Source: Amoeboaphelidium protococcarum X5
Taxonomy: Eukaryota; Fungi; Aphelidiomycota
Reading direction: 5' to 3'
Assembly (NCBI GenBank): GCA_023515725.1
Contig: JALDTO010000124.1
Coordinates: 1-5,635 of the forward strand
Length of the DNA: 5,635 nt
Shown here: piece after piece, positions 1-5,635 of the stretch
Layout of the letters: each line of letters starts with the position of its first letter
Position numbering within the stretch: position 1 is the first letter of the stretch
Notes under the pieces: model-generated
The model's input: only the letters and a program-made list of their open reading frames with translations
Told to the model about the DNA's origin: nothing
The model's database searches: none
Position numbers and translations under genes: made by a program

Positions 1-118
1 GGCCTTGAGGACATGGCTTACCAGCGCCACACGAGCCAACAGCATCGGTGCTAGTTGTTTCAGCAAACGCGCCAGCTGCAAAGATCAGCGCAATAGATTG
101 AATTAGGACGAACTTCAT
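1..118 (-). CDS. 5' part of a secreted protein with a probable hevein-like (CBM18 / Chitin_bind_1) domain; runs off the left edge
   Basis: ATG at 118-116 in an AAAAATG context gives MKFVLIQSIALIFAAGAFA-ETTSTDAVGSCGAGKPCPQG... This is a typical signal peptide (K, hydrophobic core, AFA cleavage site) followed by CG-x4-C-x2-G, the same spacing as the first CBM18 domain of the gene at 3196..3591 (GACGNGTSCAEG). The diagnostic CCS-x2-G-x-CG lies outside the window. Confidence 0.75.
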   Translation of the reverse strand, partial: MKFVLIQSIALIFAAGAFAETTSTDAVGSCGAGKPCPQG

Positions 119-213
119 TTTTTAGGTAGATAGATTTATATTAGTTTATGGATAACTTTATTACTATTATTTGTTAATTTAGAAGAAAAGAAAATGCTTC
201 ATGATAACGTGAA

Positions 214-220
214 TTTATAG
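214..220 (-). promoter_or_regulatory. Candidate TATA box (CTATAAA on minus strand) of the left-edge CBM18-like gene
   Basis: TTTATAG at 214-220, 96 nt upstream of the ATG. The identical 7-mer lies 94 nt upstream of the second CBM18 gene. Confidence 0.4.
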
Positions 221-817
221 TGCAAACTTGTATAATCTTCTTATTGGCTAGGAGTTTCAAATGTAACAAGCACGATGCACCACGTCACACCTCCTGATCA
301 TTGTACTACACTAATGTAACGATGTCTGGAAAACTGAGGACATTGAAATTTGTGGAGCACAGTATGTATCTACTATTTAGATCCTCCTAGACGATTGATA
401 GAATGCGCTTAACATTAATGGTTTTAAACGCTTAGCTTGATCAGTTAACTATTGCTACAGTATGGTGATTAAACCATATCTGTAGAATTATATTATAAGT
501 ATTGTTATACCCGTGAACATTTTCGCTAAGTTATAAATAATTGTCCTGTCCTAAAACTATACATAGAGCGGTGTAATATTCATCACTTGATACGCGTTAT
601 CAACCAGAGCTTTGTCTGTCAGTAAAGCCGAGTGCTTGTTATCTCCTTAAAATACAGTCCTCTTTAACACGTCTCTTACATCGTAAGGATATGATAAGCA
701 AAGCATTTACTTTCAAACCCATTCATCATATATTGCGATAACTACTTTACTGTACATACACAAGAACAGCAACTTGACAGTGCGCGTTATCTTTTCGAAA
801 AGTCAAATCTTTGTGTT

Positions 818-833
818 TCTCTCTCTCTCTCTC
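818..833. repeat. (TC)8 microsatellite / pyrimidine tract about 60 nt upstream of the COG4 ATG
   Basis: Directly visible tctctctctctctctc followed by acactct. CT-rich tracts near transcription starts are common in fungal promoters. Confidence 0.85.
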
Positions 834-894
834 ACACTCTTCATTCAGTAGTAGCCTTTGCCAACCTCTAACACTATACTGTTGTCTCTGAAAT

Positions 895-3018
895 ATGACT
901 GTTAATAGCATTGCTTAATCTTTAGAGAGCCCAGATTTACTAAGACTTTAGCTATAAAGCTTGATTGAAAAAGAAGCTGAAATCGATTAATAGATAGAAT
1001 CTCTCCTACAAGAATCCCGGGTTGAATTGATTGATTCTAAAGTCCGTGCATTGTTAGACTCAAACCAACTTCTATTCCAACAGACTGGGGATACTGCCAA
1101 CCAAATACAATATTCTGTCAAGGCAACTAGTAGCGATGTCGCTAATCTTTACAATAAGATCAAAGATTATGATTTAGAGTCACAAGATATTCGACAACAG
1201 TTGAAAACGCTTCATGATTCCGAGCTATTCGTCGAAATGGTAAAGGATATCTCTGACATCATGCAGTAGCAGCAGGATTTCAACCTTTAATTGGCATGCG
1301 ATCAAATTAAAATATTTAACGAAAGATTTTCAGACTTTACAGCAGTTGATTTGAGTGTTGAAATTGGTGGAGAGTCGCTGAATGTTGAGGCGTGTTAGAA
1401 GTTTGTTCAAAGTCAGTCTCTCACTCTGAAGAAGATTATTGACCAGCGATTACAGAGATACCAAGAGTCTAAATAAGATGCGCAGTGGACGTAGACATGG
1501 AGGCTGCTTCCTCTCATAAGTCAGTAGAAGCATGGTATGGAGTGTCTGACTAATAATCTTATCCAGTCTATGAGAAGAGATCTGCCAGTGCCTGGTATCG
1601 ATGCATCGTCTGAGAAAATTGTGCGCTACGTAGCAACACTGGTTGATTATGTAGCACAATTGCTGACTAGATTCAAGTAGGTGATTTTGAAGTCTTACGG
1701 CGTGTATGGTCTCATGTATCTTCTTAAAGGTCTAGAAGCTGAGTTGGAGCTACAGGGATGCCGTATACTGGATGTGTATAGTGATTCAAAGTCTTTAAAT
1801 TTATTGCTACAACGAGTATAAATTCAGTCATCCATGGGAGTATCAACATCGTCCAAGTTTAAGTCTTAATCTTAATCTCAGTAATAAGATGCCAATATTG
1901 ATATGAAAGATGTTGCGTCTGTTGTCACTGATCTTGTCGCGTTTTCACATCATTTTGTACTGGTTCGATTGTTCATGCTGTCATTTGGAAAGGAGGTTTA
2001 ATCTATGCGTGCATAGATTGCCATCTAATAGATCGATGATCCATGCATTGAGTTTTTGAATAATCCTAAATTGTCTCGAGAAGATTTACTCAACAAGAGC
2101 AGCAAGTTGAATGATCGTGTTAAAGAGCTAATGTCCATCTCTTATGTTCAATTTGAATCCTTTATGATTACTTAGAGTGTCAACAAGGCTGTGGCCAACG
2201 ACAAGTACGTGGAAGATGAATTGCATGGTGAGAATATCTCAAGCTGTGTGGACACTACATTCTTTGTGCTAAAGAAGAGTATAAGTAGAGCTATACAGAG
2301 CTGTAACGCGGACATTGTATGCTCTATCGTGAATATAGCGGTATCAGTACTGGATTCCACTTTCTACAGAGGGCTTAATAGTAAGGTGATGTACAATTTT
2401 GGTGCAAACGTGCAGTATATTGTTGAAAATAGAGATCTTCTCGGTGGGTACGTGATTCTGTTGAATGATTTTGATGTCGCGGCCAAGTACACTGTCAGAT
2501 TGAGTCGAGATATTTAACACCAGGTGGACTAGTTTATGGTCGTGACAAACTATCCTCTAAATGTAAAAGATCTGATACTGAGCTGTCTGTAGTCATTAGA
2601 TGAGTTTTAAGGAAGATTTTAGGAGGCAATGATGGATGGAGTTCAGGTGTTGTATATCTCATTGTACAAGAGCATCGTTAAGTAGTTGGTTAGTGATAGC
2701 TTGAAGACTGCCAAGAATGGTTATCACAATATCGACAAGTTTAGGTAGGGAATTAATGCGATATTAAAAGAGTGTCACTTGATGCGCGGTAATGTTGTCG
2801 TTGAATTGATGTCAATGATTATGGACGTGTTGAATCATATATATGTTTAGCAAATGGAGTCTGTTTAATCATTGCAGGATGTTAGATACGCAGTTTAGAG
2901 TTAGTTGGCATAGTACTAAAAGTACTTCTAGTCTATACTTGAAGAATATGATATCGATCTGGATGTTCCAAGTTTTTTGTCATCAAAGTTGGATCCTATC
3001 TTAAGTTTGCTATCATGA
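895..3018 (+). CDS. COG4: Conserved oligomeric Golgi complex subunit 4 (707 aa with TAA/TAG=Gln)
   Basis: Single frame from ATG 895 to the first in-frame TGA at 3016-3018, containing both ORF-track fragments (1027.. and 2191..) and 36 internal TAR codons (16 TAA, 20 TAG). Recognised COG4-like segments: N-terminal coiled coil (IDSKVRAL...LYNKIKDYDL), WRLLPLISQQKHG, VILKSYG...LLKGLEAELELQG, and VKELMSISYVQFESFMITQSVNKAVANDKY...SSCVDTTFFVLKKSISRAIQSCNADIVCSIVN, which closely resembles the COG4 motif around 'VNKAVALD...SSMVDDVFYIVKKCIGRA' (recalled, not searched). Confidence 0.88.
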
Positions 3019-3195
3019 GGTTCACTAAACTAGCAAGCTAATACGAGTTTTTGAAATTTTTATTAATATTCTGAGTGATCCAAATGTTAACGCTGTGTAA
3101 AATACCAAATAAATGAAGAAAAATGACTGGTTAATATTGAAATTTTATAATACTTCATCAGAACAATTACTGCAATAAGACACAATTACATGGTA

Positions 3196-3591
3196 TCATT
3201 CCTCTGGAACTTCGCAGTTTCCATCAGAGTACTAAGTCTGGCAGGTAGTAGTAGCACAATATAGAGCACCAGTACCGCAGTAACCCCATTCATTACAACA
3301 GTTTCCGGCTGAACAGCCATACTCAATGCCATCAATGACGCCACAGCGACCCTCAGTGTCAACAGGCAATTGGCTTACATTTTCATAACAATCAGCGCCA
3401 GACCAAAAGTCTTAACACCCATTGCCACAGTATAAATCACCTTGACCACAGAATCCGTAAGCGGAGCAACAGTAGCCCTCAGCGCAGGAAGTGCCATTAC
3501 CACAGGCACCTGGCTCTTGAGCTGCCGTCATAAACACGGTGAAACAACTAACCAGCAGAAACGCGTAAAATGATAAAGTCTAAAATAACAT
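3196..3591 (-). CDS. Secreted 131-aa protein with two tandem hevein-like chitin-binding domains (CBM18), no catalytic domain
   Basis: ATG 3591 to TGA 3198-3196: MLFQTLSFYAFLLVSCFTVFMTAAQEPGACGNGTSCAEGYCCSAYGFCGQGDLYCGNGCQDFWSGADCYENVSQLPVDTEGRCGVIDGIEYGCSAGNCCNEWGYCGTGALYCATTTCQTQYSDGNCEVPEE. Signal peptide, then two 8-Cys domains with the CC(S/N)xxG(F/Y)CG-x5-YC signature. Three Gln are encoded by TAR (3580-82 TAG, 3412-14 TAA, 3232-34 TAG). Confidence 0.93.
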
Positions 3592-3684
3592 TTTTATATC
3601 TATGTATGAGTAAATAGCTATTAAATTTGATAAGAGTAGTTTATTTTTATATATAAAGAAGATGTAATAATAGAGTGTGAGGCT

Positions 3685-3691
3685 TTTATAG
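3685..3691 (-). promoter_or_regulatory. Candidate TATA box (CTATAAA on minus strand) of the tandem CBM18 gene
   Basis: TTTATAG 94 nt upstream of ATG 3591, in nearly the same position as in the other CBM18 gene. Confidence 0.4.
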
Positions 3692-3907
3692 CCAAAGTTT
3701 TGTAATGGATGTAACTTGAGCTCTTAGTTATCATAGGTGGGTCACAAACTTGTAACTAGTCACACGTATCACCTATCTGTCACAATGAGAGCAACTGACC
3801 ACTTAAGTTCATTCAAAAACCTGGACACAAATACAGAAAGAAGAACAATGGAAAAGGAGAATTGCAAAACCAAGATAAAGTAATAAGGCACCAAATACCA
3901 ACAGATT

Positions 3908-5374
3908 TCATTTGTTTCTACCGTCAATCACAAATGCTGTCAGAAAAGGAACAGCAATCAAACCAAGTAGGACGCAAATTCCACCAACTGGTATTGAGAG
4001 TGGTTGTTGCATGTCAGAAAATTTCTGCACTTGCTTATACTACTCCAACTTATACTGAGCCTTCTACTTTCTTGGATTAGACATTGACTAATGACGCTCA
4101 AATAGTAGTTAACTCTTCTTTACAAAGTGATGAAGAGATTTCCGCACCACTAAATTCAAATCGAACAGAACAGTCGTTGCGTCTTTGTATAGTAATGCTA
4201 AGGTGTCCTCTTCATCTTGATCATCTTTAGCATCACCAAGCTCTTTATCATCATCATCTAAAGATAATGCACCAAGTAATTTCTCATAATCAGAGGTTGG
4301 ATACAACTAATCAATATCAAACTACTAATTTGCTTCTTATAAAGAGGCAGCGTCATCAAGCTTATATACATCGTGCGTAGACTCAAACTATTACACGTAA
4401 CCAAAAAAGTCTGTAATCAGCATTTAATCTTAGTGTCGCGATAGTAGATCTGTCCGAACACCAAAATGACTGTAAAGCAGATCAGGTCTCAATGATGAGA
4501 ACAAGTCATTAAGCTTCGCCTTGCTCGACATTGAAGTCACCTGCGACTCCATGAAATCCAAAAGATAGTATGTAAATCTATCAATGACTGCCACACCTAA
4601 ATCATGTGAGGTATGATGACTATACGAGTTCTCCTTCTTCTTACTACTACCTGCAGCCATTACATTAGGCGAGTAGAATCGGAAATATAAAGTATTAGCC
4701 TGGCAAGTATCTATCATGAACAAAATTTCCTTATATCGACGCTTCTCATTCATCTAATGGAAGGCATCCGCAATATCCCATGAGCTGATTTCTTCATTAT
4801 CTTGAAACTTTAAAAATTCATCTCCACCATGTCCGGTCATGTACACAAGAACATTACTCTTATCGTCAGACATTAAACGCTTAGATTTCGGAACATTCTA
4901 CTCATGCCGGCCTGTGAGGACACGTAAGAAATTCTCCACCGTCACTTCATAGCCTCTATAGTCAACTTCAACATCCTCGCCATACAAATCAAGTCTACGA
5001 TCAGCATTATTGTATATCGTTCCCGGGTATTTATTACGAGCATTGCAGGCAACATCATCAGCTAGCATAAGAATGATATGAGAGTCTGGAATACCAAGTC
5101 GCTTTACCGTACGATAGAATGATAGAGTATTCGCAATGTGTCGATAGTTGAACCAGAATCTTGATGTACACACCAGCACAGCCCAATTGTTGGAGTGTTT
5201 TGCCTCACTTTGACTAAAAGAATCAGCATAGAAAGCTCTCACGGCCGACTGTACTTGTAACTCTCTACTATTCTCATTAGGAGAATCGACAAACACCAGT
5301 TATTCATTGCCTTCAGAGGCAGCTAATATAAAAATATAGCAGATTAACAACAGCGAAATGGATATCAGCTTCAT
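3908..5374 (-). CDS. GPI8: GPI-anchor transamidase catalytic subunit (peptidase C13 family; Gpi8/PIG-K), 488 aa with TAA/TAG=Gln
   Basis: ATG 5374 (signal peptide [22 protein letters not shown]) to TGA 3910-3908, one frame joining the three ORF-track pieces across 15 TAR codons (6 TAA, 9 TAG). Hallmark motifs: [25 protein letters not shown] (catalytic His), [17 protein letters not shown] (catalytic Cys), [15 protein letters not shown], and a C-terminal TM helix ([21 protein letters not shown]) with a short tail DGRNK. Confidence 0.97.
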
Positions 5375-5510
5375 ATTAGTAGATGTACACAGATTGGGTT
5401 TGAGTTAAAAGACTGATGTGTTGCGGTTAAAAAGAAAGAGAAACGTTGTAATGAAACAAGATGCAATGGAGTGATAATAAAATTTCAATTCATTTGTACA
5501 ATTCATTATT

Positions 5511-5635
5511 TCAATTAATTGCAATAGTCTTCTTACTTGGCAGTGCCTCGGCTCTCTTTGGAATCTTCACCTCCAAGACGCCATTCTCATAATTGGCAGA
5601 GATGTTATCAACATCCGCGTTCTTTGGCACCATCA
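5511..5635 (-). CDS. 3' end of a small heat-shock protein (HSP20 / alpha-crystallin domain); starts beyond the right edge
   Basis: ...MVPKNADVDNISANYENGVLEVKIPKRAEALPSKKTIAIN-TGA (5513-5511). It has the sHSP signature A-x-Y-x-N-G-V-L-x-V-x-I-P-K and the C-terminal I-x-I motif. Confidence 0.92.
   Translation of the reverse strand, partial: MVPKNADVDNISANYENGVLEVKIPKRAEALPSKKTIAIN

Follow-up and report, generated by a model that had tools for sequence, protein, structure and literature searches.

The nuclear code of the aphelid Amoeboaphelidium protococcarum: UAA and UAG as probable ordinary glutamine codons, examined within a duplicated genome

We analysed a 5,635-nucleotide stretch of Amoeboaphelidium protococcarum X5 (contig JALDTO010000124.1, positions 1 to 5,635 of the forward strand; 'the window' below means this whole stretch), whose genes are punctuated by in-frame TAA and TAG codons. 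The window is one entire contig in the searched assembly, which comprises 346 contigs and 23,646,343 bp. From the sequence evidence it is very probable that the nuclear code of this organism is NCBI table 6. UAA and UAG (TAA and TAG in the DNA, together TAR; CAR stands for CAA and CAG) would be ordinary glutamine codons, making up about half of all glutamine codons, with UGA as the stop wherever a gene end was examined. They would be served by dedicated tRNAs and an altered eRF1, and the mitochondrion keeps TAA as a stop. The assignment of TAR to glutamine had been proposed in an earlier reading made from the letters of the window (the sequence-only reading). It is supported by three independent lines of evidence: the exchange of codons between gene copies, conserved glutamine columns and tRNA genes with cognate anticodons. 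The recoding is real and had been correctly read; it has been known for this species since 2013 and is thus a rediscovery.

Read with the standard code, the window contains no stop-free frame of at least 150 codons in any of the six frames. Taking TGA as the sole stop opens frames of 708 and 552 codons. The genes concerned, and the codons discussed below, are as follows.

895..3018, forward strand: COG4 gene, 707 amino acids, intron-free, with 16 TAA and 20 TAG (36 in-frame TAR) and a TGA end
3196..3591, reverse strand: gene for a two-domain CBM18/hevein protein of secreted type, 131 amino acids, with 1 TAA and 2 TAG (3 TAR) and a TGA end
3908..5374, reverse strand: GPI8/PIG-K transamidase gene, 488 amino acids, with 6 TAA and 9 TAG (15 TAR) and a TGA end
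5511..5635, reverse strand: 3' end of an HSP20 gene, with a TGA stop at 5513-5511 (Pfam HSP20, E 6.9e-9)
1264..1275, forward strand: glutamine run CAG TAG CAG CAG; the duplicate copy has TAG as the first codon
1864..1887, forward strand: serine/glutamine run with four TAA codons; TAA and CAR codons are mixed in the duplicate copy
3412..3414, reverse strand: TAA closing the first hevein domain (its C-Q end); the duplicate copy has CAA
4754..4756, reverse strand: TAG at GPI8 codon 207, a conserved glutamine; the duplicate copy has CAG

The sequence-only reading had counted 36, 3 and 15 in-frame TAA or TAG codons in the three complete genes, with no internal TGA and no frameshift, and had placed TGA at all four visible gene ends (COG4, CBM18, GPI8 and the HSP20 3' end). 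It had also described the two glutamine runs at 1264-1275 and 1864-1887. All of these counts and coordinates were reproduced. Position-specific base composition predicts about 12 TGA codons across the three genes, against none observed internally; the comparison is partly circular, the frames being cut at TGA. A domain search was run on the separate stop-free pieces of each gene, and the Pfam matches extend over both sides of TAR sites. The pieces of COG4 matched COG4_m (E 1.4e-11 and 6.5e-4) and, weakly, COG4_N (E 0.012); those flanking the TAA of the CBM18 gene on either side matched Chitin_bind_1 (E 2e-7 and 3e-7); and those of GPI8 matched Peptidase_C13 (E 4.6e-22).

Being duplicated, this genome offers an internal test of codon meaning. 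Genome-wide duplication has been described in A. protococcarum (PMC10608142). Contig C192 carries a duplicate of the window region, 89% identical and the sole other copy returned by a DNA search of the genome itself, and this duplicate is also TAR-rich. The COG4 duplicate on C192 has 707 codons and is 92.5% identical under code 6, and in the CBM18 duplicate codon 60 is CAA and codon 120 is CAG. The genes for eRF1 and Pelota likewise occur in pairs, as do most of the tRNAs. We compared 6,626 aligned codon pairs from 15 duplicated gene pairs. Exchange of TAR with CAR was seen at 58 of 407 sites (0.143), against 59 of 472 (0.125) for the synonymous control, Leu TTR with CTR, and 0 to 0.011 for non-synonymous controls for T/C at the first position. 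Taken codon by codon, each exchange is synonymous-like: 0.19 for TAA with CAA, 0.10 for TAG with CAG and 0.12 for TAA with TAG. When TAR in one copy faces something other than TAR in the other (77 cases), the partner is a Gln codon in 58, Lys in 9, Glu in 5 and TGA in none. This paired-copy test of what TAR means needs no outside assumption. The two eRF1 copies differ by 50 synonymous and one non-synonymous change; such purifying selection rules out that these genes are pseudogenes.

Conserved glutamine columns lead to the same assignment. The TAG at 4756-4754 had been placed on a conserved glutamine of GPI8, and this holds: glutamine occupies the column of codon 207 in 83 of 90 homolog fragments and in 56 of 64 longer homologs. 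In eRF1 the last codon of the catalytic GGQ is TAG in one copy (GGT GGT TAG) and CAG in the other (GGT GGT CAG). This TAG corresponds to human Q185, since in the alignment to solved structures the preceding stop-free piece ends at human G184. The TAA at 3414-3412 does lie on the hevein glutamine, as had been proposed; the sister domain offered as its comparison, which uses CAG, reads YCATTTCQ and does not have the YCGxGCQ motif. The better control for this codon is the duplicate gene copy, with CAA at the same position. Support from conserved columns is stronger for TAG than for TAA.

The pattern extends beyond the window. We surveyed 198 kb of fetched nuclear DNA, less than 1% of the genome, for open reading frames (ORFs) of at least 300 codons. 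The standard code gave one, TGA as the only stop gave 66, and treating only TAG or only TAA as sense gave 12 and 3, respectively. In 50 ORFs (23,306 codons) there were 361 TAA and 384 TAG against 367 CAA and 372 CAG, so that TAR makes up about half of the glutamine codons.

Genes for tRNAs with UUA and CUA anticodons, which the sequence-only reading had suggested looking for, are present at two loci each. All four are Rfam RF00005 matches above the cut-off (48.6-52.1 bits), with the anticodon in register with the match:

tRNA with anticodon CUA: C158:362956-363027 and C200:31431-31502
tRNA with anticodon UUA: C158:383536-383608 and C200:16432-16504

These dedicated tRNAs would read UAA and UAG. 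Like the nuclear tRNA-Gln(UUG), they have a short variable loop. In both, C27 lies opposite A43 or U43, leaving position 27:43 unpaired and the anticodon stem with 4 bp; tRNA-Gln(UUG), for comparison, has a U27:G43 pair. An unpinned 27:43 in tRNA-Trp promotes UGA readthrough (PMC13092985). The genes were missed by a search for a D-arm pattern and detected with a T-arm/anticodon pattern. One genome pattern search gave no tRNA-Gln(CUG), the pattern probably being too strict.

The second component of the proposed mechanism is eRF1, which is altered in the TASNIKS and YxCxxxF regions in a way that may have cost it most of its recognition of UAR. Relative to the human protein it carries F56Q, T58A, S60V, R68K, L124M, L126Q and K130R, with the GTS and NIKS motifs intact. 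A further change, L69Q, has no diagnostic value, since the standard-code eRF1 8ip8 has it too. The changes at T58, S60, L124, L126 and K130 overlap positions known from PMC3384315, in which the Stylonychia set T122Q/S123F/L124M/L126F turns human eRF1 UGA-only. The stop-reading motifs of eRF1, which the sequence-only reading had suggested inspecting, do carry substitutions; a UGA-only specificity, and with it the loss of most UAR recognition, may follow by analogy with that mutagenesis. Residue 126 of eRF1 (loci L003 and L004, 1441-2757) is encoded by CAR in one copy and by TAG in the other. Synthesis of eRF1 itself requires the recoding, because residue 126 and the GGQ glutamine are each TAG in one copy. 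In the accessible literature, which includes neither of the two primary papers (Karpov 2013; the genome paper of 2022), we found no earlier account of the 27:43 mismatch or of these eRF1 substitutions.

The recoding is nuclear, since the ORFs of the mitochondrial contig (C346, locus L009; 28,427 bp, about 24% GC) end in TAA. This contig also carries a tRNA-Trp with anticodon CCA and an intron-split cob gene whose intron ORFs resemble LAGLIDADG endonucleases by eye.

Public sequencing runs bear on both the DNA and the transcripts. Their DNA contigs match the window with no differences over long pieces. In one run of undeclared kind from a related strain, contigs cover the genes and coverage between them is zero, as in a transcriptome. 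A C>T difference at 1264, which gives the TAG of the duplicate copy, occurs in contigs of at least three public runs and is carried by this transcriptome-like one. A dual RNA-seq study of A. protococcarum was published in 2021 (PMC8657485), to which the transcriptome-like run may belong. Depth over the HSP20 region (window 5453-5635) is extreme in the transcript-like run, at about 180,000, a summed value, several HSP20 paralogs sharing the same 3' end.

The 488-amino-acid GPI8 protein in GenBank is identical to the table 6 translation of the window gene, and the copy on C192 is MIR68_006113. The table 6 translation of a proteasome beta5 gene on contig C57 is exactly KAI3641497.1 (MIR68_000627, A. 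protococcarum; 100%), the next closest beta5 protein being that of Paraphelidium. Accessions KAI3631655 and KAI3639621, attributed to strain X5 in PMC10057920, lie inside the MIR68 range, which makes X5 the probable strain of this genome.

Several points weigh against the table 6 assignment or temper its support. The agreement with GenBank proteins amounts to prior knowledge and is not independent proof, the annotators having picked the table. In GPI8 the majority of TAR sites occupy columns that vary among homologs and so say little. As support at the RNA level, the gene-covering run with C>T at 1264 is indirect and suggestive only. A DNA search of the genome with tRNA-Gln(UUG) missed the UUA and CUA tRNAs, which are too diverged from it. 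Finally, it is from the behaviour of the codons that we infer the charging of these tRNAs with glutamine.

Might UAA also terminate? The code could be partly ambiguous, as in Condylostoma or Blastocrithidia, with UAR read as glutamine within genes and UAA also ending a minority of them near the 3' end of the mRNA; a partly restricted eRF1 would compete with the 27:43-unpinned UUA and CUA tRNAs. This would refine the glutamine assignment and not replace it, and we regard it as unlikely. If true, it would mean that an opisthokont has a codon serving both as stop and as sense. The unchanged GTS and NIKS motifs of eRF1 are in its favour, as is the fact that a few genes end in TAA-TGA or TAA-TAG-TGA. 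Endings of the type TAA-TAG-TGA-TGA or TAA-TGA were seen, for example, at L017 8120-8999, L005 1823-3922 and L021 786-3128, all on the reverse strand. In two genes, however, one copy closes with TAA-TGA where its duplicate has CAA-TGA. In every one of the paired real genes protein-like conservation reaches a TGA, and in none does it decay past a TAA. The TAA share of glutamine codons does rise to 0.38-0.40 at 11-20 codons before TGA, compared with 0.25, a rise that rests on small numbers and could reflect false read-through of untranslated regions. Against this, 50 independent ORFs show no depletion of either TAA or TAG over the final 10-60 codons ahead of TGA, and the TAA share is 0.25 in the last 10 codons and 0.25 in gene bodies (small counts, with distance measured from TGA and not from the poly(A) site). 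Genome-wide, the codon after the string HDEL is TGA in 7 cases, TAA in one and TAG in two, and control codons occur there 0-4 times. CV[IV]M is followed by TGA 8 times and by TAA and TAG 3 times each, the latter two within the control range of 0-6. A CVVM followed by TAA, seen as a bare string match at C154:678009, counts in favour of UAA termination. These termination tests, made on a small sample, support no dual meaning of UAA. As for TGA, it was found as an internal sense codon in none of the gene pairs examined. The earlier statement that TGA is the only stop is therefore true of all gene ends examined (the four in the window and those of the paired genes, a sample of less than 1% of the genome); for the genome as a whole it is unproven.

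The remaining explanations are far less probable. A residue other than glutamine for TAR (Glu, Tyr, Lys or Leu), or a difference in meaning between TAA and TAG, is very unlikely. Some TAR codons do fall in variable columns rich in E (GPI8 159, proteasome beta5 256), and TAR exchanges with 9 Lys and 5 Glu codons between copies. Both TAA and TAG nevertheless exchange chiefly with glutamine codons and with each other, at synonymous rates, and the invariant GGQ is written with TAG. On these grounds Glu, Tyr and Leu, as well as a split meaning of the two codons, were rejected. We give almost no weight to pseudogenes, sequencing errors or removal of TAR by RNA editing or splicing. A look for public runs recorded as RNA found none; editing would have to affect about 3% of all codons, and cognate UUA and CUA tRNAs exist. 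The essential eRF1, Pelota, proteasome beta5 and GPI8 genes carry TAR in both copies under purifying selection, and the public-run DNA contigs agree with the window. Intact standard-code copies of the window genes elsewhere, which the sequence-only reading had said would imply pseudogenes, did not emerge from the own-genome search, the only other copy of the region being itself TAR-rich. Pseudogenes and sequencing error were rejected on this evidence. Equally improbable is an origin of the DNA in a new lineage that reassigned these codons independently, given the exact matches to GenBank MIR68 proteins of A. protococcarum. Metagenomes scanned with proteasome beta5 as query gave 45 related loci; in none does a TAR line up with a conserved glutamine, and no environmental relative sharing the code emerged. 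The guess that the source was an aphelid proved right, and the source is A. protococcarum itself. The suggestion that another source would make this a new independent reassignment therefore fails, the code of the species being already published.

The rest of the window contains the following feature:

1..118, reverse strand: 5' end of a second gene for a CBM18-type secreted protein, truncated by the contig edge, with full-length paralogs on C192

These paralogs have in-frame TAR and TGA ends. Small genes for secreted tandem-CBM18 proteins (window 1-229 and 3196-3591; L026-L028) form a local family, with more copies in tandem on C192 and others on C329 and C235. A complete copy of the HSP20 gene, with in-frame TAR, lies on the fetched locus L026. 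The window GPI8 has about 14 additional in-frame codons (approximately 3989-4030) ahead of the transmembrane helix; the three other A. protococcarum copies have 475 amino acids compared with 488.

Passages in three later papers (PMC5304391, PMC6299283 and PMC11687900) credit the assignment of UAR to glutamine in A. protococcarum to Karpov et al. 2013 (Protist 164:195, PMID 23058793). Species and reassignment are the same, there is no difference in the code itself, and the GenBank proteins for the window genes already carry Q at every TAR. The residual value of the present analysis lies in the details of the tRNAs and eRF1 and in the question of UAA termination. In practice, table 6 has to be applied to every stretch of this genome; otherwise genes are invisible or resemble pseudogenes. 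A. protococcarum is also useful as a culturable fungal relative with a reassigned stop.

Table 6 is also used by Tetrahymena, Paramecium and Stylonychia/Oxytricha, by Hexamita, by Streblomastix and by some Ulvophyceae. UAA and UAG as glutamine, UGA as stop and cognate UUA and CUA tRNAs are common to these and to A. protococcarum, which differs in having an independent origin of the code, within the opisthokonts. Another aphelid, Paraphelidium, uses the standard code (PMC6299283). The eRF1 of Stylonychia likewise has an altered N domain and shares L124M and a change at L126 with that of A. protococcarum. The latter, unlike the Stylonychia set, keeps T122 and S123, and its residue 126 is Q where that set has F. 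Reassigned stops are also shared with the lineages whose codes are ambiguous (Condylostoma, Parduczia, Blastocrithidia and Amoebophrya sp. ex Karlodinium). Unlike in those codes, UGA is never internal in A. protococcarum and TAR is not depleted near gene ends. In those lineages the anticodon stem unpinned at 27:43 belongs to tRNA-Trp with anticodon CCA (PMC13092985), in A. protococcarum to the UUA and CUA tRNAs. The 4-bp-stem tRNAs of A. protococcarum are fully cognate to UAA and UAG, whereas those of the ambiguous-code lineages are near-cognate to UGA.

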